The notes under the pieces were generated by a model. The model saw nothing but the letters and a program-made list of their open reading frames with translations. It ran no database searches and was not told where the DNA came from. From Diplonema japonicum (lineage: Eukaryota; Protista; Euglenozoa: Diplonemea), in the NCBI GenBank assembly GCA_964019335.1, contig OZ025707.1:310001-374000 (forward strand): a stretch of 64,000 bases of DNA. The letters are read 5' to 3'. Numbering within the stretch: position 1 is the stretch's first letter; each line of letters opens with the position of its first letter. Below, in pieces: positions 8,393 to 64,000 of this stretch. Position numbers and translations under genes: made by a program.

Positions 8393-8419
8393 GATACTGA
8401 GGTCCGGCACCCGCAGTAG

Positions 8420-11760: not shown

Positions 11761-11842
11761 GGAGCTTGTAATGAAGAAGCTTCAAACCCACCTCCCCCCT
11801 GCCCTCTGGGAGGTTGTGTTCCGCTTCTCTATTCTAACTTAA

Positions 11843-13465: not shown

Positions 13466-13687
13466 GCTTGGCAAGCGTGTCTGATTTAAAAAAAAAAAGG
13501 TACAAAAAAGAAATTAGAAATCTTTTTAGCCCGTCAACATGCAGGCTGTGATGGGTCACTTAGGATATGAAGCGATAGGGTTTTCTTCCGAAAGCGGGAA
13601 TTTCCGAGCCAGATCTTATGTTTTGAGTTTTATTTTCGTATCTTATAAACACCACTTATTCCCCTCTCGAACCACACACAGGACAGG

Positions 13688-19600: not shown

Positions 19601-20727
19601 AAAGTGAGGATGGAGTTAGCACCAGTTGTGGAGAGGCTCACACCAGTTGGGGTGGATAGGTTCCTCACTTTGAACAGGAATGAAGATGGACTGTCGTGGG
19701 AGTGCATTGTGTACAGTGCAAAAGAGACAAAAATGGACAAAGAAAACTATCGCTTCCCGATCCCCGCAAGCAAAGAAGGACCACTGCGACATGTGGTGTG
19801 TGGCGATACGCTGCTCGTGCAGGGAGGGGACAAAGACAGCAACTGGCTGCTGAAGGAGGACAAGGCAGTGCGTCTGTACACAAAGAGCTTTTTTGACGAG
19901 GAGCGAAAGAGGTTGAAACTTCTCAATGTTTACGCTTCTGCGGCGCGTACTTACTACCACCTTGAGGGCGACTTGTTGGTGGAAATGGAGCCCCCGAAGA
20001 GAGAATTAGTCCTGGGTGGCCCTGTGTTTGAGATAACTGTCTCGGGTGACGGCAGGGTTGGGACGTTGGTGCGGTGTGGGGACACCAAGATAGATGTTGT
20101 AACGTACTGCAGGGGGAGGAACACTGTGAGCCGTCTCAAGGAGCCGGTGGACATGAACTTGGCTGAGATCAAGTGGGACTACCGTAAACAAGTGTTCAAG
20201 GTGAGGTCTGAGGGCAACGAAAAGGGGGGAGGGAAATGGTATAGAGCAGAAGAACTAGGCCCTGAGATGATAGTGTTGGTGGAAACAAGCCCGTTGGGAA
20301 ATGATGATGTAGACCCCCCTGCTGTCCTGTCCTGTCCGGATCAAGAATACAAAGAGGGAACCGAGACCTGCGATCAGCTGGTGTACGAGGACACCAACCC
20401 CCCTGCAGATGATGTTGCCACCATAAGACACAGTTCACACCAGGCATGGATAGAGAGGCCGCCACAGCAGTTGCAGGCACTCGTGGTGAAGACAGGTGAC
20501 GTGACGAAAGTTCTTCTGAAGGCAGACTTTATAAACACAGTTCAGTTACTTAAGAACAACCTTGTCGCCGTTGTTGGCGGGAACGTGTACTTCTGGGGCT
20601 GGAAGTGCAGCATCAATGCTCAGTACGGCTACACACCAGCAGGGTCCACAGGTGAGTGGTACGTGAACAAGCAGCTCACTGATACCAACATCGTGAAGGT
20701 CATGTCATGTATGCATTGCAATCAGAA

Positions 20728-20763
<36 letters not shown>

Positions 20764-21277
20764 CGGAGTAGAAGGTAACGAGAAGGCAGATGAACTCGCC
20801 GAGCAAGGTAGGGATAAGGAAGCGACGCAGGGGATAAGCCTGAACGCGGCGAAGAACTACCTGCAGAAGACGACGAAGGCGGAGATAAGAGCAGGACTCG
20901 ATAAAAATCGAGAATACAACAAGTGGACGAAGGGGAGAGAGGCACCGAAGCGGATGGAAGGGCTCAGCAGACGCGAAGAAGTAAACCAGCTAAAGACTGG
21001 TCATCACCACCTGCTCAAAGAGGAGTACGCAACCCAACGCACCTGCGAAAAATGCGACGGCACAACACAGAGAACACTACAACACCTCCTCCTAGAGTGC
21101 CCAGCGACCAAGGCGGCCAGAGACAAGCACTACGACTCCTCATCCTCATCAAAGACGCGAAGAGGGCAATCAGGTTCCTCGAGGACACCGAAGAGACAAC
21201 CTACAAGCCCACTGGCAAGCCCCCCGACGAGCCCACCGACTAACCCCCACCGACTAGCCGTATACCTAGCAAGCTAA
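13688..21277 (+). CDS. Giant NLR-like protein copy 1 (2x helical domain, degenerate NACHT, pentapeptide repeats, beta-rich C-terminus); native sequence ends about 20728, remainder is LINE insert
   Basis: LPVHVFLPKMKNP, LALILVGYS, YSFSSEWQQEIFTA and AAVAITILSAANDSFAGMDFRGIQIPGASL match, in order and spacing, NACHT-pentapeptide-WD40 proteins. Paralogues at 49257 and 58746. Confidence 0.75.
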
Positions 21278-24920: not shown

Positions 24921-25951
24921 CCCTTGCAGCCGCTATTACTTCAGCTGTCAGTGGTGGTGACATGCCCCCACCCCTTGCAGCCGCTATTACTTCAGCTGTC
25001 AGTGGTGGTGACATGCCCCCACCTGGGTATGAAGTACCCCTTGCGGCCGCTGCCGTCAGTAGTGGTGACATGCCCCCACCTGGGTACGAAGAACCGCTTG
25101 CAGCCACTACTTCTTCAACCACCCTCACAAAAGAGGAGGGGAGGCTTGCCTTGGTGAGCGCTGTTTCAAAAAAGGACCATAAGGAGATGGAGCGTCTAAT
25201 AGTGGAGCGGGGTGTCGACCCTGGTGCAACGGACAGCGATGGTTTCACAGCCCTACACTATGCAGCTCGCGAAAACTATTACACAGCCGTGGCTGCTCTC
25301 GTCTCTACTCACAACCAGGACCCTGGTGTGAAAAGCAATGAGGGCTGGACACCGCTTCATCAAGCAGCAGAGAATGGAAACCTCGATATTGTTAAATGTC
25401 TCGTTGAACACCCGGCTTGCGAGCAAGATGCAGGTGTCGAAAACCACAACGGTAGGACACCGGTTCATCAAGCATCACTGAACGGCCACCTCGAGACAGT
25501 TAAATATCTCGTCGAAACTTGTGATCAAAACTCTGGTGTCGAAAGTAAAAGTGCTCTGACCAAAAGTAAAAGCGGTCTGACTCCAGTTCATCTAGCATCA
25601 CTGAACGGCCACCTCGAGACAGTTAAATATCTCGTTGGAACTCTCAGCCCTGAAGATCACGACACAAGTGCGTGCAGCTACGGTCGGACACCGATTCATC
25701 TAGCATCAGAACGCGGCCACCTCGAGACAGTTCAATTTCTCGTTGAAACTTGCGGTCTAGACTTCTCAGCCCAAAGCAGCCACGAAATCCGACCAATTGA
25801 CCTAGCGAAGCGGAACAAACATACGAAGGTTGTTGATTATCTTGAACGCCCCGGGAAGAAAATCGAAGGGGGGATAGAAAAAGGGGCCACGCGGAAAGCC
25901 GTGAAGAAGGGAGGTGGTTTTCCATCTTCGTTTACAAACTCTGTGAAGTAG
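24746..25951 (+). CDS. Ankyrin-repeat protein with N-terminal Pro-rich tandem repeats (PPGY)
   Basis: GFTALHYAA, GWTPLHQAA, GRTPVHQAS, GLTPVHLAS, GRTPIHLAS; N-terminal DMPPP(GYEEP)LAA repeats. Confidence 0.9.
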   Translation: MSSTSSVSDGDVLPPGCEEPLEASISSAVSSSDMPPPGYEEPLAATTSSAVSGGDMPPPLAAAITSAVSGGDMPPPLAAAITSAVSGGDMPPPGYEVPLAAAAVSSGDMPPPGYEEPLAATTSSTTLTKEEGRLALVSAVSKKDHKEMERLIVERGVDPGATDSDGFTALHYAARENYYTAVAALVSTHNQDPGVKSNEGWTPLHQAAENGNLDIVKCLVEHPACEQDAGVENHNGRTPVHQASLNGHLETVKYLVETCDQNSGVESKSALTKSKSGLTPVHLASLNGHLETVKYLVGTLSPEDHDTSACSYGRTPIHLASERGHLETVQFLVETCGLDFSAQSSHEIRPIDLAKRNKHTKVVDYLERPGKKIEGGIEKGATRKAVKKGGGFPSSFTNSVK

Positions 25952-39880: not shown

Positions 39881-41748
39881 ATAACTTTAATCTTTGTGCA
39901 AAGGCATTGTTTAAGTGTTACCCCACCATATTCTTGCACGGAAGAACGCCAGTAAGATTATATCATAGTACGACATGACTGGAACGGCCGCCCCGGGGCA
40001 TCCGCTGCTCAACCAGTTGCGTAAGAAAAATATTCTTCCTTCTATGGACAGGACAGAAGGATTTCGGTGTGCGGGTGGGTACTCATTCTTGCTTCCTTCT
40101 GTTTTCTCTTTTGGTATCCTTCTTTTAAAAGAAAGATGTGAGAATAGTATCCACTTTGCCGAAGGACTATCCATGAGGATGATAATCTTGGGAGTAGAAA
40201 AAAAGAACACGAAGACCTTACGCAAGTAAGAGTGCTGGCCCGGCGAGCTACGAGGGCAAAAACCTCTTTTTCTTCTAGAAGATGAGAAATATATTATAAT
40301 GCGACATGATCAGACTGGAACGGCCGCCCCGGGGCATCCTCTGCTCAACCCGGCGGACGTGGGAGGCCCTTCTTCGGAAGGTGCCAGTCGCTTGATCAGT
40401 GCCGTCGAATGCGCGCTATATTTTATAAGTACATATAGCAAAATCGATTGAAAGAAAAAGAACGCATACCAAGGGTGACGAATAGGCAGCAACACGGGCT
40501 CAGAATCTTGGTTACCAGGGGCACCATGGCTGGGGTTGAGTTGCACACCGCACGCATTAAGGACACGACGCGGAACGCAAAAGAAGCTACAACTAGGCCG
40601 AGGCGCGCCCCCTGTAATCAAGTAGACAATACTTGTGCAGGGAGCCCTGCCACATACTGCAGGCACCCTTAAGTAGTCTCTTTTTTTTTTTTTTTTTTGG
40701 CGGGCCGTTGCTAACCACTTCGTTCCTATCATAGTGAATTTTTTTTTTTCAACCACCCTGCCGAGAAACGAAAAGATGAAAGCTCCGCTCCCGTTTTCCT
40801 TCTTTTTCCTTTCCTTTTCCTTCTTTTTTCGTATACCCGTGATAATAAAAAGAGTAAAAAAAAGGGGGGGGGGGAGAATCGATGACACAAAAAACAAGAA
40901 AAATAAGCGCAGGTGTTGCCCCTGGAGCTGCACAAAATCCAGGTGTGGCACACCACCCTACTCCGCTTCTGCGACAGAAGACTGCACGTGAAACACTTGA
41001 GAGCTTGAAGAAAGACTGCGGAAGAAGGTGAAAGGAAGGAGGGCCTTCCCTGCTGAACCACGCAAGAGAGTACATACGGTGCGTAGAAGAGCAATCTTTG
41101 CATCAACGAAGACCAAAATACAACCTAGAAGAGTTGGGGAAGCAATGGGCAATGGAAAGAATAGAAAAAGCACCCAAGCTTTCCACGGCCTCCTTCTGGA
41201 AGATGAGCGACATGATCAGACTGGAACGGCCGCCCCGGGGCATCCTCTGCTCAACCGGCGGACGTGGGAGGCCCTTCTTCGGAAGGTGCCAGTCATTTGA
41301 TCAGTGTCGTCGAATGCGCGCTATATCTTATAATTATATAACAATCGATCGAAAACGGAAGAACGTATACCAAAGGAGTTTCCACGGCCTCTTGGAAAGA
41401 ACCCAAGAAGGGTGGGACACAGCATGCATTCAGAAGAAGGTTAGAGGCAAGCGAATCTTCCCGCGGAGAGCCAGAAGAACCGCGCATGGAACAGAAGGCC
41501 AGTTTTTGCATCAGAGAAAACCAAGAAGGATCTTAAGAAACTGACGTAGCCGAAGAAGAAAGGCCGAGGCCCCCGAAAAAAGAGAAAGGGGTAATTAAGT
41601 AGACAAGGGGGACGTTTCAAAACAGGAACCTCCTGTATCTCATCTCTTTTATTTCAGTTTCATCTGTTTCGTGTGTTTTATTTATACCTCTTCAATATTT
41701 TATATTTGTTTTCTTATCCTTAATCACTTCAGGCAACACCAACAAAGT

Positions 41749-42200
41749 ATGTCTACAACCAGCAGCGTCAGCGACGGTGACGTGCTCCCACCTGGGTGTG
41801 AAGAACCGCTTGAAGCCTCCATTTCTTCAGCCGTCAGTAGTAGCGACATGCCCCCACCTGGGTATGAAGAACCGCTTGCAGCCACTACTTCTTCAGCCGT
41901 CAGTGGTGGTGACATGCCCCCACCTGGGTATGAAGTACCCCTTGCGGCCACTACTTCTTTAGCCGTCAGTGGTGGCGACATGCCCCCACCTGGGTATGAA
42001 GTACCCCTTGCGGCCACTACTTCTTTAGCCGTCAGTGGTGGTGACATGCCCCCACCTGGGTATGAAGTACCCCTTGCAGCCACTACTTCTTTAGCCGTCA
42101 GTGGTGGCGACATGCCCCCACCTGGGTATGAAGAACCGCTCCCAGCCGGCAGCAGCGAAGTGCCCTCATTCGGGTATGAAGAAGCTCCCAACCGGCAGCA
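41749..42200 (+). pseudogene. Orphan Pro-rich leader ORF (66-bp PPGY tandem repeats) truncated by recombinase relic
   Basis: Same start as the 24746 gene; AVSGGDMPPPGYEVPLAATTSL units then GYEEPLPAGSSEVPS. Read-through into antisense YR sequence. Confidence 0.75.
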
Positions 42201-42210
42201 GATTTGTACT

Positions 42211-43098
42211 TTATTGCTTAACTACATAGTATCCAGGGGAACTGATCACCTCGGGTTTGGTCTTTCCCTTTATAAGATCCACAGATGCCTGAGACTGTTC
42301 AATGTAGCGCCTTGCCATTGCCTCGCTGGTCCATCCGAAGTGTGTCGCTAATTGAGCCGAAGTCACCCCATTTGCAGAGGCAGTAGTTGCACAGCTTCGG
42401 CGAAAAGTGTGTGATGTATACTGCCTTGGGTTCTCGAGGTTCAGCTTCTCAGCAAGGAAAACACCATTGTAAAAGGTAGTTTTCCCAAGTGGTTGGTTAA
42501 CAGGCTTGTTGTCTCGGCATTGCAAAAACAACCTGCTTGCCTTGATTGCACACGCTCAACCACTTGCTTAGGGCATCTGCAAATTGTTCGCATACAGCGA
42601 ACTTTGTTTTCATGTTGTTCTTGGTCCTGTGAACACTTACGTCATAGCCAGTGCTCGTCTTTTGTATATCACTTCGCTGCAACAGGCAGCATTCTCCGGC
42701 ATACATGAGGGAAACCGCAGCCTGCTTTGCAATCCCCCCCAAAGCTAGGAAGTCCAGGGTTTGACGTTATGTCAAGACAGGGGCTTGCTTGCACTAATCA
42801 TCTATGGCGGTCAACCTGGGCCAGTCTTGCAATTTTGTGCTGTGCTTAAGCTTCATGGTATGGTTCAGGCGGCTATAAAGGGACCAGAGGCTCGACGGCT
42901 TAAGCCCTTTGTACCGGGCATCAAAGTACGTTATCACGTCGCCTCCTTGGGCTTTCTGGTGCGGATACGGCTGAACTCGGTGAACTAGTCCCACTCTTTT
43001 TTATAGGTTTCACTGCTTTTTACTATGCTGAACACATCCTCAAGGATTTCGTCAACTTTTTTTGTTGATTTTTTAGCCTCTTTTCTTTGACGCCCCAT
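42211..43098 (-). mobile_element. Tyrosine recombinase pseudogene (Crypton-like DNA transposon)
   Basis: YTSHTFRRSCAT (HxxR), HFGW, AMARRY catalytic Tyr; N-terminal TYKKEW..ITYFD..KPSSLWSLYSRLN. Stops and frameshifts. Confidence 0.85.
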
Positions 43099-49086: not shown

Positions 49087-49256
49087 ACCCCCACCCCCCT
49101 AAGGGTGGTCCTCGAGTGGGATTTGCCCTTAAACATCGCCTTTTCTTTATGTTCTTCCGAAAGCGGGAATTTCCGAGCCAGATCTTATGTTTTGAGTTTT
49201 ATTTTCGTATCTTATAAACACCACTTATTCCCCTCTCGAACCACACACAGGACAGG

Positions 49257-52200
49257 ATGATGGACCTCGTGTTCTTCAAGTGGGCAGGTGCACCGGAACC
49301 ACGAGACGCCACACATGACGTGCCAGCCTTCCTCGAGGAGCTGGGTGACTGGACGAAGCGTGTGAGGCGAGATGCAATAGGAGAATTCATTGAATGGTTC
49401 CAACTGAACGAGGTGAGGCTCTCGGCACTGCTCGACGTGAACCAACAGCCCGACCAGTGGGCGGGAATGCGGGAGTCCATACTGGCCTCTGTGTGTGTGC
49501 TGCTGGAGCTACTGGTGCTACTACAAATAGAAGGTAGCCCGAGCAACATACACCTGTACCGTGTGGTGGCCTCTTTGGTGGGACAGCTCGTCATACACGA
49601 CAAGAGCTGCATTGCTGCTGATCAGCTGGTGGACTTCCAGAAACTCGTAAACAGGCTGAAAGACGAGGAGAAGCACAAGAAGCACCCTGAGTTCTTAGCA
49701 TACCACACTATCATCACTGGTGGATGCGTCCTCGGGGTGAGTCCCTTTGGCGACCTTGCTGCTGTGGTGAAGGACATGACAGCTTTCACGACAACGCGGC
49801 CCTCTGTTGAAGGCTTGTTCACTGGGACTGGGGAGGTAGAAGCACTGCGCAGTGCTGCAACACACAGCGTTCTTGTTCAGCGTCTGAAGTACCTGCTTAT
49901 GGCGGGCTTCATGTCTCACGGCCATGCGGGGAGCGAGGGAGACGCGGCAGAGCTCGAACAACTGGTCAAAGAGATCCACGATGTGGTGTGCCCTTCTGGG
50001 GAAAACGCTGAATGGAAGGTTCTCCCTGTGTCGCTGTGGGCGGGGACCCTTTCTGAGCTGTTGACATTCTCTCGTGTCGTGTCCTCGAAGGCAACCAACA
50101 AAGAGGGAGAATGTCGCCTTGTTCTCCACAACAACTGTGTTCTGTACCAAAGGATTCCTATGCTCGGGGAACGAGGGGCCATACAGTTTCCTGTGAATGT
50201 TAAGAAGGTGGTGGTTGGCTGCTTGGTATGTCTTCTGAGGCACGGAAGGCTGACACCTGGTGCACTGACAGAGTTGCTCAGGAAAAGTGAGACAACAGAC
50301 AACAAGAAGGCTGTGGGCGCATTGCTGAAGCCTGTGAGCGATGAGAAGGCTCAAGTAGTACGGCACAGGGCGGTATTTACCAGTTATGAAGTGATTGAGA
50401 GTGGGTTTCTTGGCAGTGGGTTGTCAGACTGGATTACCTGCGAAGTACTGGACACAGTGAGGAGCGACGTGGAGGCACAGTCACTTGTTGAGCAGATGGA
50501 GACCTTCGAGCACACGAAGTACTATTTGAACATCACGCTGAAGGAAAGATACGACAGTTTCAAAAAAGACAATGAGCACCTGCTGAATGAGGTGACGAAC
50601 CACCCAGACCAGTTTGGCATATTGCAAGCAATTGCAGAGAGGTACGAATGCAGCTTAGCTGTGCTTGCTGAAGCAATGGCACGGCCAATACCCCCGGCAC
50701 CAGCCCCAATCGTGCTTCACGGAACACAACACTTCACAAAGGACATCATGTCATTCCTCATGAACTTGGAAAATAGGGCGAAAGCAGCGGCACAGTGCAC
50801 AGTGGCAAAGGAGAGACCTGCGAAGTTGCAAACCTTTGTGAAGTGGTTCAAGCTGAACGAAACAAAACTCGGGTCACTGGTTGAGGTTCAGGACATCAGC
50901 AAGCCTATAGAGCGTGTGCTGACCGCTGTGTGCGTGCTGCTGAAGGTGCTGCAGCAGTCACTGGAGGACAGCGCACATTGCGAGGCGGGCGACACTGAGC
51001 ATGTAACCTTGAACAACATACACCTGTACCGTGTGGTGGCCACCTTGGTGTTGCAGCTCGTGACCTTCGACACTGGTTGCACTGCTTCGGATCAACTGTC
51101 GAAATTCCAGACACTCGCCACAAGTTTGAGCAAAGGAGAGAACAAGGCGTTCATGCACCCGGCATCGGCAGCGGACCACGAGGTCATCACCAAAGGGGGT
51201 GACATTCTCTCAAAAGCTTCTGTTTGGTATGATTCCTTTTCCGTTGCAGCTGGTGCTTTTGCGTTCGCGACATCGCACTTCAATTTGATCGTGATGTCTG
51301 CAGCCTGGCGTGGGGCTGTGTCCTTATCTTCTAGACTCAAAGGTATTTTGTTCCCAAGTGACGAACTTAAGATCGCAGCAATTTTCAACGCTCAATCTCA
51401 GCACCTGAAGCACCTGCTTCTGGTGAGGCCTCATGAAGCCACGGAGGCAGTACATGAGTTCGTTGACCTCGTGCACTCGGATATCTGCCCACAGAACAAG
51501 AGGAACTGGAAAGTGCTTCCTGCACAGCTGTGGGCAGGGACCCTTGCCGAGCTACTGGTGTTCTCTCGCGTCGTGTCCTCTGAGCAAAGCAAGGAGGAGG
51601 GGGAAGAAAAGTATATCCACAAAACTGGTGCCCTTTACCACAGGTTTCCTGTGTTGGGAGAAGACAAGGGACTCATACAGTTCTCTCTCATTGCGAAAGG
51701 CCGCATGGTGCAGTGCTTGATAGATCTTCTGAAATACGAACGCCAGCTGCCAAGTGTGCTGCAGGAGGGTCTTCGACAGGCGACTGAACTTCTGAGTGAT
51801 GTTCAGGAAAAGGCCAAAACGATCTTGAAAGATGAAGTGATAACAGAGGTGAGGAAGATGTTTGACGTGAAGAAGATAGAAGACTTGAAGAAAATCGAAA
51901 CTAAAGTGAAGAAACTGATGGCTGGAAAAGACATACAGGAACAGGTTGAAACTGAGGAACCTGACATGTTTTTAGGCGATGTGGAGATCGGCGACTTGGA
52001 GGTCATCGGCACTGGAGTGGTAAGGGAACTGGCTCTTTCTGGAATTAACGAGGGGACGATGGTACGGCACAGGGCAGTCCTTGCCTGCCTCGAAGTGATC
52101 GAGAGCAGGGTGCTGGACGACAGGATGTTGAAAACGATGAACAGCGAGGTGCTGAACACAATGAGGAGCGACAGAGAGAGAGAGCAATTGGAGAAGCAAG

Positions 52201-55200
52201 GACAGGTGTTCAAGAAGGCACAGCACTACCTGAGGATGACACTACAGACAGAGGCGGAAAGTTACAAGAAGGACATGGAGGGGTTGCTTGGGAAGGTGGA
52301 GAGGCTTCTGGAGCTCCGCAAGGTGGTTACCAGCGAGGAAGCTGTGCGGCACGTTGACGGGATACTGAAAGAGGCGCAGAAGGCTGTGAAGGTGTACGCA
52401 AGGAACCTTGAGGGGATGAACGCGATAGCTGGGGCGACCCTGCTGCTCACGACAAGCATCTCCGAAAGGGTGACAGGGATCGACAAGCAGCTTCAGGACA
52501 TGAAGAAGGAGGTGAGCGACATCCACAAATACCTCCAGCTGCACAGGGAGCTGAACGAGGACATCAGCCTCCTGCGACAAGCTCGTGTGGAGTCTTGCAA
52601 CAGCGACCTCCATGGGTGTGAGAGGTACTCGTACATGCAGGTTGAGAAGGTCCCCAAGAATAGTGACGACAACCTTGAAAGTTTCGACCCCACGGAATTT
52701 GCGGCCCACTTGTTGAAGCCCTGCTCTGCCGGGAGGAGCATTGTGTTCAAAGGCAGTTGTTGGGGTGCGGAGTTCTTGTCACTGGTGGAGGAGAAGCTAT
52801 GGAGCACCTACACCAACGACGATACTCAAAGCCTTCTCCCTGTTCACGTGTTCCTGCCAAAGATAAATAATCCGACGACACGCCTTGTGGAAGAGGCCCT
52901 GGAGGAGCAGCATGGGTTCACGAAGAGGAATGTGGAACGGCTTCAGGAAAAGACGAGGGTACAGAAGGCACACCTGGCACTGATACTCGTGGGGTACTCG
53001 TTCCTCGACAAGGAGTTCCTTTTGGATTCCATGAGAGAGAAGAGCAAGCTGAGTGAGTGGGGTGACCCCATCATCTTGGTGGAAGCAGACACCACCATCC
53101 TGGAGTACACTGCGGACAAGCTGTTCGGACGCAACTCGAGTGTGTGCATGGATCACGTTGGTGCGAATGGTAAAAAAAAAAAAAAAAATGGTCCACCACC
53201 TCAGGGTGAGGGAAATTTAAAGAAAACCTGTGAAGTGTACAGAATGAAGGAAATGAAGGACGAAGCCATCCAGAACATAATCGGCAGAGAGGAGGCTTCC
53301 ATCGGGGCAGTGCTGAAGTGCGCTCTGCATTACAGAAGGTTCTCTACATTCATTGAAGTGAAAGAAGAACAGCACATGACATTCCGCATGCTTCGTGCCT
53401 TCATTCGTACCATTTGCAATGAGGAGTGGGGGTTGTATGATCGCAAGATTGACGGAAAATGGCAAAAGCGTCCCTTTTCAACCATACTTACAAGTTTCCC
53501 CAGTTCTGACAAAAGTACGCTTCTGATGAAAACTATGTTGACGAAGATGGGGGAGGAAAAGGTGGAGGAAAAGGTGATGTGCGGGTGGGTGAGGTATATC
53601 ATGGAAAAGGTTCAAACCCACGGGGTGTTCACTATCCTTGATGATCTGAATACTGGTATGAATGATGAAGATGAAGATGCAAGGTCCGTCTATCGTCTAA
53701 CCAAAGAGATGAACATGGCCTTCTTGAGGACCTGCCTTGAGGAGTACCTCCGGCTGCCGTTGAGGTCACTGAGTACAAAGCACCCCTCCATCACCGACAA
53801 GGAACTCGTGAAGCTTCTGATGGACTACAACTCGCGCCTCGCACTTGACATGACACGGGACCACACGAGGCAGGCACCTTATGAGGACAGATGCCATGGC
53901 TTTCTGAGGGCACAGCACACAGGAGGGCACGATGTCGGCAAGCTGGACCAGCAGATGGTGCGGGACCTGTTTGCAGCCTCTCCTGTGGAGGTCTCGAGGG
54001 ACCAAGACGGGAAGAAACAGGAGAGGGTGTACAGCTTCAGCTCCGAGTGGCTGCAGGAGATCTTCACCGCCATTGCTGTCCATGACAAGCTGATGAGGTT
54101 CCCTCTGAACCGTATCTGTACGAAGTTCTTTGTGAGTGTCTTTTCTCACACCTATGTCTGCAAGGATGACACAGCCGACCAGGCTGAGCAGGACGAGCAC
54201 AGATGGGCACACTTCAGGAAGCAGAAAGACCTGATGGTGAGGAAGGTCAGAGAGGCAAAACCTGATTTCACCAAGGAGAAGGCCTCCAAGTACCTGGTTC
54301 TGGCGTGCAAGGCGGCGTGCGCTAGGACGGCAACATGGGACGTGCTGATGGAAGATCTGATGAACTACCCTGGTGTGCTGAGGAACTACTTGGCGAAGAT
54401 GGTGTTGAAGAAGAAAAGTTTAAACTCTGAGGATAAGCTGCTGATCTGGTTCAGGGACACACTGCTCTCGCTGGTGGAGCTGTCGAAGCTGCCGTGGTGC
54501 GATGCTCCTGCCGCCGTGGCGATCACGATCCTGTCGGCTGCGAACGAAAGCTTTGCTGGGATGGACTTCAGAGGGATCCGAATACCGGGGGCGTCCCTTG
54601 AAGACAGCACCTTTGACAGGACAGACACTGATGGTGTGGAGATGAAAGGAATCATTCGGACCTACCTGCACGGCAAGGACAAAATCAAAAGTTCCCTGAG
54701 GAAGGGCCTCCTTTCATTTGCGGCCTTCACTGATGACAAGGGCAAGGATACTGTTGCAGAGGTGTATGCGGACAAGGTGTTGTTCAGTAGGAAAGAAGTA
54801 AAACTGCCGGAAGAGATAATGAACCTGAAGAATCCGAAGATCCTGAGCAAGATAGTGCAAAGGGGAAAACAGTGTGTTCTTGTCGTTGCTTACGAAGTGG
54901 ACGGGGTTGTGACAATCGCTGAGTGTCAACAGGAAGAGGTTTCTGTGGAGGTGGTGAGCACGCCGATGGAACTTATGTTCATTGCAGACGACAGTAAAGT
55001 GTGGTGTGTGAATCGAGGTGAAGGGGGAATCGTGAGGGACGCAAAGGCAACGACAGGGGCTCAAGTTGGAGAGGAAGGGGGGAAGGAGCATAAAGTTCAA
55101 TGCGAACCTGTGTTAGTGAATAAAAAAAGTGATGAAAAAGTGAGGATGGAGTTAGCACAAGTTGTGGAGGGGCTCACACCAGTTGGGGTGGACAGGTTCC

Positions 55201-56354
55201 TCACTTTGAACAGGAGTGCAGATGGACTGTCGTGGGAGTGCATTGTGTACAGTGTAAAAAAGACAAAAATGGACAAGGAAAACTATCGCTTCCCGATCCC
55301 CGCAAGCAAAGAAGAAGGACCACTGCGACATGTGGTGTGTGGCGACACGCTGCTCGTGCTGGGAGGGGACAAGGACAGCAACTGGCTGCTGAAGGAGGAC
55401 AAGGCAGTGCGTCTGTACACAAAGAGCTTTTTTGACGAAAAGGAGCGAAAGAGGTTGAAACTTCTCAATGTTTACGCTTCTGCGGCGCGTACGTACTACC
55501 ACCTTGAGGGCGACTTGTTGGTGGAAATGGAGCCCCCAAAGGGGGAGTTAGTACTGGGTGGCCCTGTGTTTGAGATAGCTATCTCGGGTAAAGGCAAGGT
55601 TGGGACGTTGGTGCGGTGTGGGGACACCAAGATAGATGTTGTAACGTACTGCAAGGGGAGGAACACTGTGAGCCGTCTCAAGGAGCCGGTGGAGATGAGC
55701 TTGGCTGAGATCAAGTGGGACAACCATCAAAAAGTGTTCAAGGTGAGGTCTGACAAAAAAGAACAAGAAGAAGAAAAATGGTATAGAGCAGAAGAACTAG
55801 GCCCTGAGATGATAGTGTTGGTGAAAACAAGCCCGTCGGGAAATGATGATGTAGACCCCCCTGCTGTCCTGTCCTGTCCGGATCAAGAATACAAAGAGAG
55901 AACCCAGACCTGCGATCAGCTGGTGTACGAGGACACCAACCCCCCTGCAGATGATGTTGCCACCATACGTAACGGTCCACACCAGGCATGGATAGAGAGG
56001 CCGCCACAGCAGCAGCAGCAGGCACTCGTGGTGAAGACAGGTGACGTGACGAAAGTTCTTCTGAAGGCAGACTTTATAAACACAGTTCAGTTACTTTACG
56101 ACAACCTTGTCGCCGTTGTTGGCGGGAACGTGTACTTCTGGGGCTGGAAGTGCAGCATCAATGCTCAGTACGGTTACACACCAGCAGGGTCCACAGGTGA
56201 GTGGTACGTGAACAAGCAGCTCACTGATACCAACATCGTGAAGGTCGCAGCACCATGTCATGTATGCATTGCAATCAGAAATGAGAACAACACCTATTCA
56301 GGAGGAGGTACAGGCGAGAACCAATCAGCCGAGCCGTGCAAACCGAACCAATAG
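49257..56354 (+). CDS. Giant NLR-like protein copy 2 (intact, 2365 aa)
   Basis: Full-length paralogue of 13688 with the same 5' flank (49152-49256 matches 13583-13687) and a native C-terminus. Confidence 0.8.
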   Translation: MMDLVFFKWAGAPEPRDATHDVPAFLEELGDWTKRVRRDAIGEFIEWFQLNEVRLSALLDVNQQPDQWAGMRESILASVCVLLELLVLLQIEGSPSNIHLYRVVASLVGQLVIHDKSCIAADQLVDFQKLVNRLKDEEKHKKHPEFLAYHTIITGGCVLGVSPFGDLAAVVKDMTAFTTTRPSVEGLFTGTGEVEALRSAATHSVLVQRLKYLLMAGFMSHGHAGSEGDAAELEQLVKEIHDVVCPSGENAEWKVLPVSLWAGTLSELLTFSRVVSSKATNKEGECRLVLHNNCVLYQRIPMLGERGAIQFPVNVKKVVVGCLVCLLRHGRLTPGALTELLRKSETTDNKKAVGALLKPVSDEKAQVVRHRAVFTSYEVIESGFLGSGLSDWITCEVLDTVRSDVEAQSLVEQMETFEHTKYYLNITLKERYDSFKKDNEHLLNEVTNHPDQFGILQAIAERYECSLAVLAEAMARPIPPAPAPIVLHGTQHFTKDIMSFLMNLENRAKAAAQCTVAKERPAKLQTFVKWFKLNETKLGSLVEVQDISKPIERVLTAVCVLLKVLQQSLEDSAHCEAGDTEHVTLNNIHLYRVVATLVLQLVTFDTGCTASDQLSKFQTLATSLSKGENKAFMHPASAADHEVITKGGDILSKASVWYDSFSVAAGAFAFATSHFNLIVMSAAWRGAVSLSSRLKGILFPSDELKIAAIFNAQSQHLKHLLLVRPHEATEAVHEFVDLVHSDICPQNKRNWKVLPAQLWAGTLAELLVFSRVVSSEQSKEEGEEKYIHKTGALYHRFPVLGEDKGLIQFSLIAKGRMVQCLIDLLKYERQLPSVLQEGLRQATELLSDVQEKAKTILKDEVITEVRKMFDVKKIEDLKKIETKVKKLMAGKDIQEQVETEEPDMFLGDVEIGDLEVIGTGVVRELALSGINEGTMVRHRAVLACLEVIESRVLDDRMLKTMNSEVLNTMRSDREREQLEKQGQVFKKAQHYLRMTLQTEAESYKKDMEGLLGKVERLLELRKVVTSEEAVRHVDGILKEAQKAVKVYARNLEGMNAIAGATLLLTTSISERVTGIDKQLQDMKKEVSDIHKYLQLHRELNEDISLLRQARVESCNSDLHGCERYSYMQVEKVPKNSDDNLESFDPTEFAAHLLKPCSAGRSIVFKGSCWGAEFLSLVEEKLWSTYTNDDTQSLLPVHVFLPKINNPTTRLVEEALEEQHGFTKRNVERLQEKTRVQKAHLALILVGYSFLDKEFLLDSMREKSKLSEWGDPIILVEADTTILEYTADKLFGRNSSVCMDHVGANGKKKKKNGPPPQGEGNLKKTCEVYRMKEMKDEAIQNIIGREEASIGAVLKCALHYRRFSTFIEVKEEQHMTFRMLRAFIRTICNEEWGLYDRKIDGKWQKRPFSTILTSFPSSDKSTLLMKTMLTKMGEEKVEEKVMCGWVRYIMEKVQTHGVFTILDDLNTGMNDEDEDARSVYRLTKEMNMAFLRTCLEEYLRLPLRSLSTKHPSITDKELVKLLMDYNSRLALDMTRDHTRQAPYEDRCHGFLRAQHTGGHDVGKLDQQMVRDLFAASPVEVSRDQDGKKQERVYSFSSEWLQEIFTAIAVHDKLMRFPLNRICTKFFVSVFSHTYVCKDDTADQAEQDEHRWAHFRKQKDLMVRKVREAKPDFTKEKASKYLVLACKAACARTATWDVLMEDLMNYPGVLRNYLAKMVLKKKSLNSEDKLLIWFRDTLLSLVELSKLPWCDAPAAVAITILSAANESFAGMDFRGIRIPGASLEDSTFDRTDTDGVEMKGIIRTYLHGKDKIKSSLRKGLLSFAAFTDDKGKDTVAEVYADKVLFSRKEVKLPEEIMNLKNPKILSKIVQRGKQCVLVVAYEVDGVVTIAECQQEEVSVEVVSTPMELMFIADDSKVWCVNRGEGGIVRDAKATTGAQVGEEGGKEHKVQCEPVLVNKKSDEKVRMELAQVVEGLTPVGVDRFLTLNRSADGLSWECIVYSVKKTKMDKENYRFPIPASKEEGPLRHVVCGDTLLVLGGDKDSNWLLKEDKAVRLYTKSFFDEKERKRLKLLNVYASAARTYYHLEGDLLVEMEPPKGELVLGGPVFEIAISGKGKVGTLVRCGDTKIDVVTYCKGRNTVSRLKEPVEMSLAEIKWDNHQKVFKVRSDKKEQEEEKWYRAEELGPEMIVLVKTSPSGNDDVDPPAVLSCPDQEYKERTQTCDQLVYEDTNPPADDVATIRNGPHQAWIERPPQQQQQALVVKTGDVTKVLLKADFINTVQLLYDNLVAVVGGNVYFWGWKCSINAQYGYTPAGSTGEWYVNKQLTDTNIVKVAAPCHVCIAIRNENNTYSGGGTGENQSAEPCKPNQ

Positions 56355-58410: not shown

Positions 58411-58478
58411 GAACGTGGGCGTCGAGCCGATCGCGGGGAAGAAGGGTGATCTGGCCATGATACAGAAAAAGCACGGAG

Positions 58479-58748
58479 CAGAAGGCCAGTTTTTGCATCA
58501 GAGAAAACCAAAGGACCTTAAGAAACTGGGCAGGCGGAAGTGGCAAGAAGAAAGAGTAGATACTTTGAGAAAGGCAGCACGGCCGAAAAAGGAGGAAGGC
58601 CGAAGCCCCAAAAGGGAGAAAGGGTAGATAAGTAGAGACAAGGGGGACGTTCCAAAACAGGAACCTCCTTTATCTCATCTCTTTTCTTTTCTTTTCACCA
58701 TTCTTAATCAATTCAGCTATATGCACAATAAAACAACAACAAAGTATG
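58479..58748 (+). promoter_or_regulatory. Dispersed leader cassette with putative trans-splice acceptor and start context
   Basis: cagaaggccagtttttgcat..ggacgttccaaaacaggaacctcc(t)tatctcatctc..ttaatca(c/a)ttcag..caacaaagtATG. Also at 24485-24748 and 41492-41751, split at 8010-8143/8601-8700, 3' part at 10918-11071. Confidence 0.6.
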
Positions 58749-61700
58749 TATTCAAGCTCCAGTGGCAGCGAACAGCCCTCATCCGGGTATGAAGAACCGC
58801 TCCCAGCCGGCAGCAGCGAAGTGCCCTCATCTGGGTATGAAGAACCGCTCCCAGCCGGCAGCAGCGAAGTGCCCTCATCTGGGTATGAAGAACCGCTCCC
58901 AGCCGGCAGCAGCGAAGTGCCCTCATCTGGGTATGAAGAACCGCTCCCAGCCGGCAGCAGCGAAGTGCCCTCATCTGGGTATGAAGAACCGCTCCCAGCC
59001 GGCAGCAGCGAAGTGCCCTCATCCGGGTATGAAGAACCGCTCCCAACCACCACCGCTCCTTCAACCACCAGTAGCAGCGAAGTGCCCACATCCGCTACAT
59101 ATGACGTGCCAGCCTTCCTCAGGGAGCTGGGTGACTGGACGAAGCGTGTGAGGCGAGGTGCAATAGGAGAATTCATTGAATGGTTCCAACTGAACGAGGT
59201 GAGACTCTCGGCACTGCTCGACGTGAACGAACAGCCCGACCAGTGGGCCCCCCTGGAGGCAATGCGGGAGTCCATACTGGCCTCTGTGTGTGAGCTGCTG
59301 AAGGTGCTACTAAGAGAAGGTAGCTCGACGCACATTGCCATGAACAACATACATCTGTATCGTGTGGTGGCCTCTTTGGTGGGACAGCTCGTCATACACG
59401 ACAAGAGCTGCATTGCTGCTGATCAGCTGGTGGACTTCCGGGTACTCGTAAACATGCTGAAAGACGAGAAGCAGCACAAGAAGCACCCTGAGTTCTTAGC
59501 ATACCACACTATCATCACTGGTGGATGCGTCCTCGGGGTGAGTCCCTTTGGCGACCTTGCTGCTGTGGTGAAGGCCATGACAGCTTTCATGACAACGTGG
59601 CCCTCTGTTGAAGGTTTGTTCACTGGGACTGGGGAGGCGGGGGCACTGCGCAGTGCTGCAACACACAGCGTTCTTGTTCAGCGCCTGAAGTACCTGCTTA
59701 TGGCGGGCTTCATGTCTCACGGCCATGCGGGGAGCAAGAGAGATGCGGCAAAGCTCGAACAACTGGTCAAAGAGATCCACGATGTGGTGTGCCCTTCTGG
59801 GGAAAACGCTGAATGGGAGGTTCTCCCTGTGTCGCTGTGGGCGGGGACCCTTTCTGAGCTGTTAACATTCTCTCGTGTCGTGTCCTCGAAGGCAACCAAC
59901 AAAGAGGGAGAATGTCGCCTTGTTCTCCACAACAACTGTGTTCTGTACCAAAGGATTCCTATGCTCGGGGAACGAGGGGCCATACAGTTTCCTGTGAATG
60001 TTAAGGAAGTGGTGGTTGGCTGCTTGGTGGATCTTCTGAGGCACGGAAGGCTGACACCTGGTGCACTGACAGAGTTGCTCAAGAAAAGGGAGACGACAGC
60101 CAACAAGAAGGCTGTGGGCGCATTGCTGAAGACTGTGGGCGATGAGAAGGCTCAAGTAGTACGGCACAGGGCGGTATTTACCAGTTATGAAGTGATTGAG
60201 AGTGGGTTTCTTGGCAGTGGGTTGTCAGATAGGATTGCCTGCGAAGTACTGGACACAGTGAGGAGCGACGTGGAGGCACAGTCACTAGTTGAGCAGATGG
60301 AGACCTTCGAGCACACGAAGTACTATTTGAACATCACACTGAAGGAAAGATATATCAGTTACAAAGTCGACAATGAACACCTGTTGAATGAGGTGACGAA
60401 CCACCCAGACCAGTTTGGCATATTGCAAGCAATTGCAGAGAGGTACAAATGCAGCTTAGCTGTGCTTACTGTGCTTGCTGAAGCAATGGCACGGCCAATA
60501 CCCCCGGCACCAGCCCCAATCTGCTTCAGAACACAAGACTTCACAAAGGACATCATGTCATTCCTCATGAACTTGGAAAATAGGGCGAAAGCAGCGGCAC
60601 AGTGCACAATGGCAAAGGAGAGACCTGCGAAGTTGCAAACCTTTGTGAAGTGGTTCAAGCTGAACGAAATAAAACTCGGGTCACTGGTTGAGGTTCAGGA
60701 CATCAGCAAGCTTACAGAGGGTGTGCTGACCGCTGTGTGCGTGCTGCTGAAGGTGCTGCAGCAGTCACTGGAGGACAATGCACATTGCGAGGCTGAGGAG
60801 CACCTTGTAACCTTGAACAACATACACCTGTACCGTGTGGTGGCCACCTTGGTGTTGCAGCTCGTGACCTTCGACACTGGTTGCACTGCTTCGGATCAAT
60901 TGTCGAAATTACGGACTCTCGTCACAAGTTTGAGCAAAGGAGAGAACAAAGCGTTTATGCACCCGGCATCGGCAGCGGACCACGAGGTCATCACCAAAGG
61001 GGGCGACATTCTCTCAAAGACTTCTGTTTGGTATGATTCCTTTTCCTTGGCAGCTGGTGCTTTAGCTACATCGCACTTCAATTTGACCGTAATGACTAAA
61101 GGGGGCGGCATTCTCTCAAAAGCTTCTGTTTGGGGTGATCTTGTTTCCACATCGCACTTCAATTTGGAGGTAATGACTGCAGCCTGGCATTGGATTACGT
61201 CCTTATCCTCCAGACTCAAAGGCTCCTTGTTGTCCACAAGTGACGAACTTAAGATCGCAGCAATCTTCAACTCTCAATCTCAGCACCTGAAGCACCTGCT
61301 TCTGGTGAGGCCTCATGAAGCCACGGAGGCAGTACATGAGTTCGTTGACCTCGTGCACTCGGATATCTGCCCACAGAACAAGAGGAACTGGAAAGTGCTT
61401 CCTGCACAGCTGTGGGCAGGGACCCTTGCCGAGCTACTGGTGTTCTCTCGCGTCGTGTCCTCTGAGCAAAGCAAGGAGGAGGGGGAAGAAAAGTATATCC
61501 ACAAAACTGGTGCCCTTTACCACAGGTTTCCTGTGTTGGGAGAAGACGAGGGAATCATACAGTTCTCTCCCATAGCGAAAGGCCGTATGGTGCAGTGCTT
61601 GATAGATCTTCTGAAATACGAACGCCAGCTGCCAAGTATGCTGATGAAGTGTCTTCGACAGGCGACTGTTCTTTTGAGTGATGTTCAGGAAAAGGCCAAA

Positions 61701-64000
61701 ACGATCTTGAAAGATGAAGTGATAACAGAGGTGGGGAAGATGTTTGACGTGAAGAAAATCAGAGACTTGAAGAACATCAAAACTGAAGTGGCTGATGCGG
61801 TGAAGGGACTGACGGCTGGAAAAGACAAACAGGAACTGGAACAGGCTGATCACAAGGGGACGATGGTACGGCACAGGGCAGTCCTTGCCTGCCTCGAAGT
61901 GATCGAGAGCAGGGTGCTGGACGACAGGATGTTGAAAACGATGAACAGCGAGGTGCTGAACACAATGAGGAGCGACAGAGAGAGAGAGCAATTGGAGAAG
62001 CAAGGACAGGTGTTCAAGAAGGCACAGCACTACCTGAGGATAACACTACAGACGGAGGCGGAAAGTTACAAGAAGGACATGGAGGGGTTGATTGACAAGA
62101 TGGAGAAGCTTCTGGAGCTCCGCAAGGTGGTTACCAGCAAGGAAGCTGTGCGGCACGTTGACGGGATACTGAAAGAGGCGCAGAAGGCAGTGAAGGTGTA
62201 CGCAAGGAACCTTGAGGGGATGAACGCGATAGCTGGGGCGACCCTGCTGCTCACGACAAGCATCTCCGAAAGGGTGACAGGGATCGACAAGCAGCTTCAG
62301 GACATGAAGAAGGAGGTGAGCGACATCCACAAATACCTCCAGCTGCACAGGAAGCTGAAGGAGAACATCAGCCTCCTGCAACAAGCTCGTGTGGAGTCTT
62401 GCAGCAGCGACCTCCATGGGTGTGAGAGGTACTCGTTCATGCAGGTTGAGAAGGATGTCCCCAAGAATAGTGACGACAACCTTGAAAGGAAAGAGAATAC
62501 CCATGTCACAGAAGGTGCTAGAACAATTGCTCAGGCCGACACGAAAGCACGAACGTCTCACCACACTTCCGTTAGCTCCACTAAAGGATTTAAAAAAAAA
62601 AAAGAAAAAGGTTTCAACCCCTTGGAATTTGCAACCCACTTGTTGAAGCCCTGCTCTGCCGGGAGGAGCATTATATTCGAGGGCTGTTGTTGGGGTACGG
62701 AGTTCCTGTCACTGGTGGAGAAGGAGCTATGGAGCACCTACACCTATGACGATACTCAAAGCCTTCTCCCTATTCACGTGTTCCTGCGAAAGATGAAGAA
62801 TCCGACGACACGCCTTGTGGAAGAGGCCCTGGAGGAGCAGCATGGGTTCACGCCGAGGAATGTGGAACGGCTTCAGGAGAAGACGAGGGCAAAGAAGGCA
62901 CACCTGGCACTGATACTCGTGGGGTACTCGTTCCTCGACAAGGAGTTCCTTTTGGATTCCATGAGAGAGAAGAGCAAGCTGAGTGAGTGGGGTGACCCCA
63001 TCATCTTGGTGGAAGCAGACACCACCATCCTGGAGTACACTGCGGACAAGCTTCAGGGTGAGGGAAATTTAAAGGAAGCCTTTGAAGTGTACAGAATGAA
63101 GGAAATGAAGGACGAGGCCATCCAGAACATAATCGGCAGAGAGGAGGCTTCCATCGGGGCAGTGCTGAAGTGCGCTCTGCATTACAGAAGGTTCTCTACA
63201 TTCATTGAAGTGAAAGAAGAACAGCACATGACATTCCGCATGCTTCGTGCCTTCATTCGTACCATTTGCAATGAAAAATGGGGGTTGTATTATCGCTGGA
63301 TTGACAAGAAATGGCAAAAGCGTCCTTATTCAACCATACTCACAACATACCCCAGTTCTGACAAAAGTACGCTTCTGATGAAAACGATGTTGACTCAGAT
63401 GGTACCAAAAACTACGAGCGAAGTGGAGGAAAAGGCATCACACAAGGATGTGATGTGCGGGTGGGTGAAGTATATCATGGAAAAGGTTCAAACCGACGGG
63501 GTGTTCACTATCCTTGATGATCTGCATACTGGCATGATGGATGAAGATGAAGATGCACGGTCCGTCTACCATCTAACCAAAGAGATGAACATGGCCTTCT
63601 TGAGGACCTGCCTTGAGGAGTACCTCCGGCTGCCGTTGAGGTCGCTGAGTACAAAGCACCCCTCCATCACCGACAAGGAACTCGTGAAGCTTCTGATGGA
63701 CTACAACTCGCGCCTCGCACTTGACATGACACGGGACCACGCGAGGCAGGCACCTTATGAGAACAGGTGTCGTGGCTTTCTGAGGGCACAGCACACAGGA
63801 GGGCACGATGTCGGCAAGCTGGACCAGCAGATGGTGCGGGACCTGTTTGCGGCCTCTCCGGTGGAGGTCTCGAGGGACCAAGACGGGAAGAAACAGGAGA
63901 GGGTGTACAGCTTCAGCTCCGAGTGGCTGCAGGAGATCTTCACCGCCATTGCTGTCCACGACAAGCTGATGAGGTTCCCTCTGAACCGTATCTGTACGAA
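58746..64000 (+). CDS. Giant NLR-like protein copy 3 (runs off window) with swapped repeat N-terminus
   Basis: ATG 58746 MYSSSSGSEQ..; joins the family sequence at ATYDVPAFL (about 59095). No stop-terminated ORF in this frame in the track, consistent with an open frame to 64000. Confidence 0.8.
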   Translation, partial: MYSSSSGSEQPSSGYEEPLPAGSSEVPSSGYEEPLPAGSSEVPSSGYEEPLPAGSSEVPSSGYEEPLPAGSSEVPSSGYEEPLPAGSSEVPSSGYEEPLPTTTAPSTTSSSEVPTSATYDVPAFLRELGDWTKRVRRGAIGEFIEWFQLNEVRLSALLDVNEQPDQWAPLEAMRESILASVCELLKVLLREGSSTHIAMNNIHLYRVVASLVGQLVIHDKSCIAADQLVDFRVLVNMLKDEKQHKKHPEFLAYHTIITGGCVLGVSPFGDLAAVVKAMTAFMTTWPSVEGLFTGTGEAGALRSAATHSVLVQRLKYLLMAGFMSHGHAGSKRDAAKLEQLVKEIHDVVCPSGENAEWEVLPVSLWAGTLSELLTFSRVVSSKATNKEGECRLVLHNNCVLYQRIPMLGERGAIQFPVNVKEVVVGCLVDLLRHGRLTPGALTELLKKRETTANKKAVGALLKTVGDEKAQVVRHRAVFTSYEVIESGFLGSGLSDRIACEVLDTVRSDVEAQSLVEQMETFEHTKYYLNITLKERYISYKVDNEHLLNEVTNHPDQFGILQAIAERYKCSLAVLTVLAEAMARPIPPAPAPICFRTQDFTKDIMSFLMNLENRAKAAAQCTMAKERPAKLQTFVKWFKLNEIKLGSLVEVQDISKLTEGVLTAVCVLLKVLQQSLEDNAHCEAEEHLVTLNNIHLYRVVATLVLQLVTFDTGCTASDQLSKLRTLVTSLSKGENKAFMHPASAADHEVITKGGDILSKTSVWYDSFSLAAGALATSHFNLTVMTKGGGILSKASVWGDLVSTSHFNLEVMTAAWHWITSLSSRLKGSLLSTSDELKIAAIFNSQSQHLKHLLLVRPHEATEAVHEFVDLVHSDICPQNKRNWKVLPAQLWAGTLAELLVFSRVVSSEQSKEEGEEKYIHKTGALYHRFPVLGEDEGIIQFSPIAKGRMVQCLIDLLKYERQLPSMLMKCLRQATVLLSDVQEKAKTILKDEVITEVGKMFDVKKIRDLKNIKTEVADAVKGLTAGKDKQELEQADHKGTMVRHRAVLACLEVIESRVLDDRMLKTMNSEVLNTMRSDREREQLEKQGQVFKKAQHYLRITLQTEAESYKKDMEGLIDKMEKLLELRKVVTSKEAVRHVDGILKEAQKAVKVYARNLEGMNAIAGATLLLTTSISERVTGIDKQLQDMKKEVSDIHKYLQLHRKLKENISLLQQARVESCSSDLHGCERYSFMQVEKDVPKNSDDNLERKENTHVTEGARTIAQADTKARTSHHTSVSSTKGFKKKKEKGFNPLEFATHLLKPCSAGRSIIFEGCCWGTEFLSLVEKELWSTYTYDDTQSLLPIHVFLRKMKNPTTRLVEEALEEQHGFTPRNVERLQEKTRAKKAHLALILVGYSFLDKEFLLDSMREKSKLSEWGDPIILVEADTTILEYTADKLQGEGNLKEAFEVYRMKEMKDEAIQNIIGREEASIGAVLKCALHYRRFSTFIEVKEEQHMTFRMLRAFIRTICNEKWGLYYRWIDKKWQKRPYSTILTTYPSSDKSTLLMKTMLTQMVPKTTSEVEEKASHKDVMCGWVKYIMEKVQTDGVFTILDDLHTGMMDEDEDARSVYHLTKEMNMAFLRTCLEEYLRLPLRSLSTKHPSITDKELVKLLMDYNSRLALDMTRDHARQAPYENRCRGFLRAQHTGGHDVGKLDQQMVRDLFAASPVEVSRDQDGKKQERVYSFSSEWLQEIFTAIAVHDKLMRFPLNRICT
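58785..59045 (+). repeat. 48-bp coding tandem repeat, 5 full units + partial (GYEEPLPAGSSEVPSS)
   Basis: Units start 58785, 58833, 58881, 58929, 58977, 59025. Confidence 0.95.

Follow-up and report, generated by a model that had tools for sequence, protein, structure and literature searches.

In a 64,000-nucleotide stretch of the Diplonema japonicum genome (the window; C60:310001-374000, contig OZ025707.1), one upstream module stands in front of open reading frames (ORFs) for a kinase, an ankyrin protein, an orphan product, and the third of three giant paralogues, here called NLR-like copies 1 to 3 (NLR1 to NLR3). The question that this locus raises is how genes of such different content came to share a 5' end. 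A sequence-only reading of the window had proposed a portable cassette of trans-splice acceptor, start codon, and repeat peptide that activates duplicated genes and gives them new N termini, which would amount to a gene-shuffling system. Our analysis argues instead for descent within one gene family and a single fusion, brought about by ordinary processes and not by a mobile unit, and we consider this history probable.

A scan of the window located the 13-mer TTAATCAMTTCAG exactly at positions 11017, 24717, 41720, and 58704, in each case on the forward strand. With up to one mismatch allowed there were 5 matches, compared with 0.30 expected, and 5 were reached in 0 of 100 shuffles; the additional site, a one-mismatch match at 7343, was set aside as a probable chance match. 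The ORFs that follow the exact sites are a kinase pseudogene (start codon at 11069), an ankyrin gene (24746), an orphan ORF (41749), and NLR3 (58746). At all four loci the motif is succeeded by CAA-rich sequence, AAAGT, and ATG, in that order, with AAAGT-ATG 16 to 39 nt downstream of the motif, which bears out the claim that one upstream module precedes four ORFs. Almost all long ORFs of the window lie on the forward strand, and the window is a patchwork of segments 75 to 97% identical to each other. Farther upstream, the segment 58475-58695 recurs at 24367-24652, at 41375-41654, and upstream of a TSP1 gene (7900-8143 plus 8599-8670). The kinase locus shares the leader and some T-rich flank and nothing more, so the proposal that it carries the module in part holds for those pieces and not for the rest. 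The "cassette" is composed of three layers, namely, the tail of a long interspersed nuclear element (LINE), a family leader, and peptide repeats. At NLR3 they are laid out as follows.

58413..58695, forward strand: 3' end of an APE- and reverse transcriptase-encoding LINE, 5'-truncated and internally deleted (LINE positions 6276-6343 and 6487-6708)
58696..58745, forward strand: leader of the kinase-ankyrin type, with a pyrimidine-rich remainder, TTAATCAATTCAG (58704-58716), a CAA-rich 5' untranslated region (UTR), and AAAGT
58746..59087, forward strand: new N-terminal module of NLR3, with the start codon, repeats of 48 bp x 5.9 (58765-59045), and a last degenerate unit, derived from the kinase-ankyrin linker
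59088..64000, forward strand: junction (59088-59093) and body of NLR3, a 2584-aa open frame running beyond the window end

The other two giant genes of the window show what this front end took the place of.

13583..21277, forward strand: NLR-like copy 1, with its native flank (13583-13687) and native start MMDFVFF
49152..56354, forward strand: NLR-like copy 2, with its native flank and start MMDLVFF

The flank of copy 1 matches that of copy 2 (13583-13737 and 49152-49306), and both converge with copy 3 at 59093 (equivalent to 13738 and 49307). The separate flank, the MMD(F/L)VFF start of copies 1 and 2, and their convergence with copy 3 had all been claimed and were all seen, with the join at 59093. 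Of six close giant paralogues (three from the window, the others on C81), five have retained the M(M)DLVFF start and the native flank. In NLR3, homology to the kinase-ankyrin linker extends up to ~59086 and NLR homology begins at 59088-59093, leaving microhomology of at most ~4 nt. No A or T run was present at this junction (59046-59093) or at 25090-25110 in the ankyrin gene. The NLR3 locus lacks the native flank and the first 17 codons, so the change was a replacement and not an insertion. The claim of new N termini thus holds for NLR3, in which the flank and the first ~17 codons were replaced, and fails for the kinase, ankyrin, and orphan ORFs, which hold the leader by descent. NLR3 is the sole true chimera of the window: both parental families keep their native ends, the junction is sharp, and the frame is kept. 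The ratio of nonsynonymous to synonymous substitution rates (dN/dS) is 0.64 to 0.69 in pairs that include NLR3 and 0.78 for NLR1-NLR2, at a synonymous divergence (dS) of 0.08 to 0.095, so that NLR3 evolves as its paralogues do. Upstream of NLR3, 56861-57524 is collinear with the orphan flank at 38934-40203 (75 to 79% identity), which suggests that the unit arriving with the new 5' end far exceeded a 270-bp "cassette."

The giant paralogues, 2400 to 2600 aa in length (13688-21277, 49257-56354, and 58746-64000), have intact frames at a dS of ~0.09, with stretches in which dN/dS is near or above 1. Their N-terminal region of ~500 aa is duplicated internally, and a partial copy of it (12619-13465) lies just upstream of copy 1. 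An identity as NLR/STAND NTPases was considered and rejected, as the protein had no sequence match in Pfam, NCBIfam, or the PDB and no GxxxxGK[ST] Walker A motif. Only language-model look-alikes with NACHT, pentapeptide, or WD40 domains were found, at scores of 0.80 to 0.85 that are rated as leads only. Having neither a NACHT or NB-ARC domain, nor a Walker A motif, nor a PDB relative behind it, the label "NLR-like" is retained as a name only.

Where did the leader come from? Genome-wide, the 13-mer TTAATCAMTTCAG has 18 exact sites in 62.5 Mb, compared with 0 for a control. Eleven of the 18 precede kinase genes, intact or broken, that begin MDPS(I/T)LQKYEQGE... or derivatives of them in the window; the remainder have unrelated flanks. 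The 5' UTR core CTACCTGCACAACAAC has 21 genomic sites, again compared with 0 for a control. The proteins of this family have a constant order: a protein kinase domain (Pkinase, 1.9e-45), a Ser/Thr/Pro-rich linker, and ankyrin repeats. In an alignment of leaders, that of NLR3 groups with the kinase type, with a few substitutions, and the native NLR1 leader is unrelated. The leader is native to a Pkinase-linker-ankyrin family that has more than 20 copies in the genome, in which it forms the acceptor-like flank and 5' UTR, and the genome motif tallies suggest that it is confined to kinase-ankyrin members and their derivatives. The kinase, ankyrin, and orphan genes have a common leader because they are paralogues of this one family. 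Among the genomic motif sites inspected, LINE tail and leader adjoin at only three loci, all in the window.

The leader varies in ways of its own. A substitution of CTACCTGCAC to CTATATGCAC in the NLR3 leader creates a new upstream ATG at 58721. The CAA run of the 5' UTR ranges from ~4 to more than 20 units among paralogues (L032-L037, L047-L061, and 11030-11068 in the window) and exceeds 50 at L049. In L047 the linker has a run of 18 Asn codons, so that microsatellite growth is seen in both the 5' UTR and the linker.

The family members and derivatives of the window other than NLR3 are the following.

11017..11830, forward strand: leader (11017-11068) before a kinase-ankyrin family member reduced to a kinase pseudogene by frameshift; only 26 codons are open from the ATG at 11069
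24367..24745, forward strand: LINE 3' fragment (24367-24652), T-rich flank, and leader with TTAATCACTTCAG (24717-24729) before the ankyrin gene
24746..25951, forward strand: ankyrin gene, a kinase-less family member, with its ATG joined to linker repeats (24776-25105) and the ankyrin body from TTLTKEEGR
41375..42200, forward strand: orphan, a duplicate of the 5' region of the ankyrin gene, with a LINE fragment, leader, ATG at 41749, 66-bp repeats, and ~1.5 48-bp units of the NLR3 type
42201..42531, no strand assigned as a whole: insert cutting the orphan ORF, with a 15-nt relic like the 3' end of a spliced leader (42201-42216, forward strand) and then a C-terminal tyrosine recombinase fragment (42211-42531, reverse strand)

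These genes also account for the repeat peptide. Kinase-ankyrin proteins contain the linker FEAPLPTT..SGGSNMHPPA..TTLTKEEGR, of which L061 already has two units. From TTLTKEEGR onward the ankyrin gene corresponds to the ankyrin part of these proteins, and its body is 67% identical to kinase residues 425-491. The repeat DNA of the ankyrin gene, the orphan, and NLR3 matched the linker DNA of four family members at E values of 1e-5 to 8e-10, and the last NLR3 unit is closer to the family linker wording than the ankyrin gene is. The codons after the ATG in all three align in phase to one linker position, and the observed alignment score was reached by 1 of 1000 shuffles each for the ankyrin gene and NLR3. 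The arrays differ in unit length (48 bp x 5.9 at 58765-59045 in NLR3, with 98% matches; 66 bp x 5.4 at 41779-42137 in the orphan; and units of 66, 51, and 57 bp at 24776-25105 in the ankyrin gene). The repeat peptide is thus the kinase-ankyrin family's own linker, tandemly expanded. Because one ATG-to-linker junction is common to the ankyrin gene, the orphan, and the NLR3 front, all three apparently descend from one kinase-less derivative. No copy of the peptide-repeat front was found outside the window in the 62.5-Mb assembly. Within this group, the orphan (40397-42147) is 93% identical to the ankyrin region at 23390-25105; it is a truncated pseudogene, and no surviving sequence is closer to the donor of the NLR3 front end. 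The fragment that follows its break (42211-42531) is antisense and directly after the relic, and it encodes the catalytic C terminus of a tyrosine recombinase (Phage_integrase, 2.7e-6).

A second lineage without the kinase domain lies on the same contig, C60, at 30 to 200 kb (L051-L059). This ankyrin-only family has the same 5' UTR and starts with MDPS followed directly by AAANNTTLTKEEGR, that is, with the first four codons of the kinase gene joined to the linker end. The kinase domain was lost twice in the family (L051-L059 compared with L032, L036, L047, and L061), at junctions that differ. The junction MDPS/AAANNTTLTK led to the tandem ankyrin-only family, and the junction M/SSTSS..., with the linker retained, led to the window genes.

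The layer farthest upstream belongs to none of these genes. The segment 58413-58695 contains the last codons of LINE ORF2, the 3' UTR, and a T-rich tail, in two blocks (58413-58478 and 58475-58695). It is ~90% identical to a young LINE family, copies of which are 97 to 99% alike. A genome search with 58479-58745 returned 339 candidates, 40 of which were scored; all scored candidates cover only query positions 1 to ~217, and 58479-58695 thus matches at least 40 genomic places among those scored. The family has hundreds of copies in the genome. Copies that were fetched share one 3' end and are variably truncated at the 5' end (219 bp to more than 1.7 kb); they end in a T run of 5 to 37 nt, and the flanks beyond are unrelated. 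A full copy at L062 (reverse strand, 3193-9935) is ~6.7 kb long, with a 583-aa ORF1 and then an in-frame 1640-aa ORF2, and it encodes endonuclease (Exo_endo_phos, 1.2e-12) and reverse transcriptase (RVT_1, 1.6e-23) domains. Both an endonuclease/reverse transcriptase ORF and a truncation series with a shared 3' end were found, and 58413-58695 is the end of an APE-type LINE. All window copies represent only the last 360 to 430 nt of the element, with internal deletions that differ copy by copy.

The TSP1 gene has this layer alone.

7900..8670, forward strand: LINE 3' fragment upstream of TSP1 (LINE positions 6344-6702), split by an ~455-bp A-tailed nested insertion (8144-8598)

The fragment stops 48 nt short of the TSP1 start codon (8718), and the kinase-type leader is absent there. 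Because the flank beyond the LINE end is unrelated to the other loci, TSP1 shares with them only a common repeat. The 5' portion of the module does recur before TSP1, as had been proposed, but it is the 3' end of a dispersed LINE and is not gene specific.

Juxtaposition of LINE ends and genes occurs elsewhere, and a different LINE family has a 3' end (48445-49150) that directly abuts the flank of NLR-like copy 2. For 8 of 29 LINE copies, an ORF of 120 aa or longer begins in the next 300 nt, which does not exceed the 8 to 12 of shifted windows but does exceed the 3.3 of the opposite strand, in a comparison with imperfect controls. A degenerate LINE tail in front of the kinase pseudogene was not significant, its score being reached in 17 of 500 shuffles. 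On its coding strand the young LINE ends in a T run and not an A run, and its 5' end is ACTC followed by a T run; its ORF1 and ORF2 are in frame with each other and separated by one stop codon. For an APE LINE, a poly(T) tail seems unusual. Directly upstream of the NLR3 LINE fragment, 57920-58405 is another dispersed repeat, which matches part of L017 (C54) at 96.5% identity.

Published work that describes polycistronic, spliced-leader-dependent expression in diplonemids reports one-strand gene arrays for a related species, with a spliced leader on essentially all of its mRNAs (PMC10161547). At all four motif sites in the window, a pyrimidine-rich tract and then an AG lie close upstream of the start codon, and the length of the CAA run differs among family members 3' of the AG, as would be expected of untranslated sequence. 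TTCAG is a putative trans-splice acceptor. A pattern search for a retrocopied joint of spliced leader to kinase 5' UTR returned none. At TSP1, at the ankyrin and orphan loci, and at NLR3, the pyrimidine tract leading to the first AG begins with the T-rich LINE tail, which may thus contribute to acceptor function. In one-strand gene arrays, an acceptor-like flank and an ATG might suffice to give a gene a new 5' end.

Two relics in the window resemble the 3' part of a euglenozoan spliced leader (ending ...TGTACTTTATTG), one of 15 nt at 42201-42216 and one of ~30 nt at 22219-22256. Both head inserted sequences, and two matches were obtained in 0 of 100 shuffles. They match the conserved 3' end of the euglenozoan spliced leaders tabulated in PMC3795323. 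Apart from these, 44381-44775 holds a degenerate tandem array with units of 48, 96, and 126 bp that is open on both strands (two 221-aa ORFs, one per strand), for which no family match was found.

Taken in the order that we infer, these observations fit the following history. The pyrimidine-rich tract upstream of the gene contains an old LINE copy, truncated at its 5' end and belonging to an abundant family, and the T-rich tail of this copy is now part of that tract. The next 50 to 90 nt (TTAATCAMTTCAG, CAA-rich 5' UTR, and AAAGT-ATG) are the native 5' flank of the multicopy Pkinase-linker-ankyrin family. One member would have lost its kinase domain, so that its ATG met the Ser/Thr/Pro-rich linker, which then expanded tandemly into the repeat peptide. 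Local duplication of this kinase-less gene would have left three copies, of which one is the ankyrin gene (24746) and another the orphan (41749), since broken. In a single nonhomologous, in-frame event, the flank, LINE remnant, leader, ATG, and repeats of the third copy would then have been joined to codon ~18 of a giant paralogue, giving NLR3. This event may have been a duplication breakpoint or a deletion fusing adjacent same-strand genes. Because the other two NLR-like genes of the window also have a family member upstream (the kinase pseudogene for copy 1 and the orphan for copy 2), a deletion that fused neighbors would be an economical route.

Several observations weigh against this history. 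The LINE fragments of NLR3 and of the ankyrin and orphan loci have distinct internal deletions, and the leader lies ~8 nt away in the former and ~64 nt away in the latter; they could therefore be separate insertions and not one inherited copy. The collinearity between the NLR3 and orphan flanks (~2 kb) is patchy, and shared dispersed repeats could explain part of it. The NLR3 flank is 10 to 25% off that of the orphan, whereas the NLR bodies are only ~9% apart at synonymous sites, a mismatch in timing that would require gene conversion or an older donor. Finally, the upstream ATG at 58721 opens a 23-codon out-of-frame upstream ORF (58721-58792) that overlaps the main start codon and may blunt NLR3 translation.

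A broader role for LINEs can also be imagined. T-tailed LINE 3' ends of diplonemids may have been repeatedly co-opted as pyrimidine tracts for the addition of spliced leaders, with LINE tail, acceptor, ATG, and expandable disordered linker together forming a reusable, recombination-prone gene starter that would equip duplicated or promoterless gene bodies with a functional 5' end; NLR3 and the two independent kinase-less ankyrin lineages would be candidate examples. We regard this idea as doubtful.

That the LINE itself moved the module is unlikely. From a LINE upstream of a kinase-less family member, the leader, ATG, and repeats could have been carried to the 5' ends of other genes by read-through 3' transduction or by template switching of the reverse transcriptase, and a 5'-truncated LINE 3' end is in fact followed directly by the leader at three loci. 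The LINE family is young and abundant, and the genome contains other retrocopied material, including the spliced-leader-like relics at 22219-22256 and 42201-42216. Such transport should nonetheless have left a tail, and neither distal junction (59046-59093 and 25090-25110) has a run of A or T. The flank and the 17 initial codons native to the NLR gene were replaced rather than displaced, and NLR3 and the orphan are collinear upstream of the LINE fragment as well. The LINE fragments are also unlike each other in internal deletions and leader spacing, and the genome contains no dispersed copies of the module.

It is quite unlikely that a dedicated unit of acceptor, start codon, and repeat peptide was captured repeatedly in front of duplicated genes, activating them and supplying new N termini. 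The appeal of this proposal lies in the module's constant orientation directly before four ORFs of one window, in the clear exchange of the 5' end of NLR3, and in the two independent kinase-less derivatives with their junctions MDPS/AAANN and M/SSTSS. Yet three of the four "cargoes" belong to one leader-owning family and have a single ancestral junction, and the sharing with TSP1 is the LINE tail alone. A mobile cassette should have defined ends; the limits of the common sequence differ among TSP1, the kinase, the ankyrin and orphan loci, and NLR3, with no common or discrete ends. It should also have dispersed copies, and a genome-wide check revealed none, as LINE tail and leader adjoin at three window loci only, the repeats are confined to the window, and the full module occurs in this window only. 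With the leader held by family descent, the repeats traced to the linker, and block boundaries that vary, we abandon the gene-shuffling system that the sequence-only reading had put forward.

An assembly chimera of an orphan-like locus and a third NLR-like copy is highly improbable even in a region this rich in 90 to 97% identical paralogous segments and tandem repeats, as neither the 48-bp x 5.9 array nor the NLR3-type leader occurs anywhere else in the assembly, which leaves no second source locus, the join is in frame within a 2584-aa open frame, and 55 to 70% of the sampled words of 56400-60400 are present in five sequencing runs from two studies.

Descent within the kinase-ankyrin family followed by one fusion has close counterparts in known systems. 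Chimeric genes of Drosophila arise by segmental duplication or illegitimate recombination. Like them, NLR3 took its 5' flank and initial codons from one parent and its body from another, with a sharp in-frame junction, and both parental families persist with native ends. Unlike in Drosophila, the donor would provide a presumed trans-splice acceptor region and not a promoter, and the setting is a diplonemid one-strand array. Multigene families of trypanosomatids (MASP and mucins of Trypanosoma cruzi and mosaics of VSG genes) have conserved 5' ends and mosaic bodies. The window resembles them in its conserved leader and N terminus, repeat-rich variable regions, pseudogenes and fragments, intergenic transposable elements, and same-strand arrays. 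It differs in that the kinase-linker-ankyrin family looks intracellular, its conservation reflects descent and domain loss, and a surface-antigen role is not indicated.

Two further comparisons concern the LINE. L1 elements are a source of 3' transduction and exon shuffling, and the window has a similar truncated LINE 3' end followed by non-LINE sequence with a start codon and coding repeats. Unlike in L1 transduction, there is no distal tail or discrete sign of insertion here, and the upstream flank is common too. SIRE/VIPER of T. cruzi gives trans-splice acceptor sites to adjacent genes. In both cases a retroelement end lies immediately 5' of genes in a trans-splicing genome, and in the window its pyrimidine-rich tail may aid the acceptor region. 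SIRE is a non-autonomous element (PMC5994713). Unlike in SIRE/VIPER, the AG and 5' UTR here come from a gene family and not from the element.

Collectively, the event at NLR3 is of a known kind, the formation of a chimeric gene in a fast-evolving, repeat-rich cluster, and involves no new shuffling system or mechanism. For annotation, it warns that apparent cassettes in a repeat-rich genome can be a LINE tail next to a family-specific leader. For the biology of the organism, the locus displays the loss of a kinase domain, the tandem growth of a linker into a new N terminus, and one case in which a giant gene had its 5' end replaced in frame, and it offers a clean, datable case of new-gene formation in a trans-splicing, polycistronic protist.

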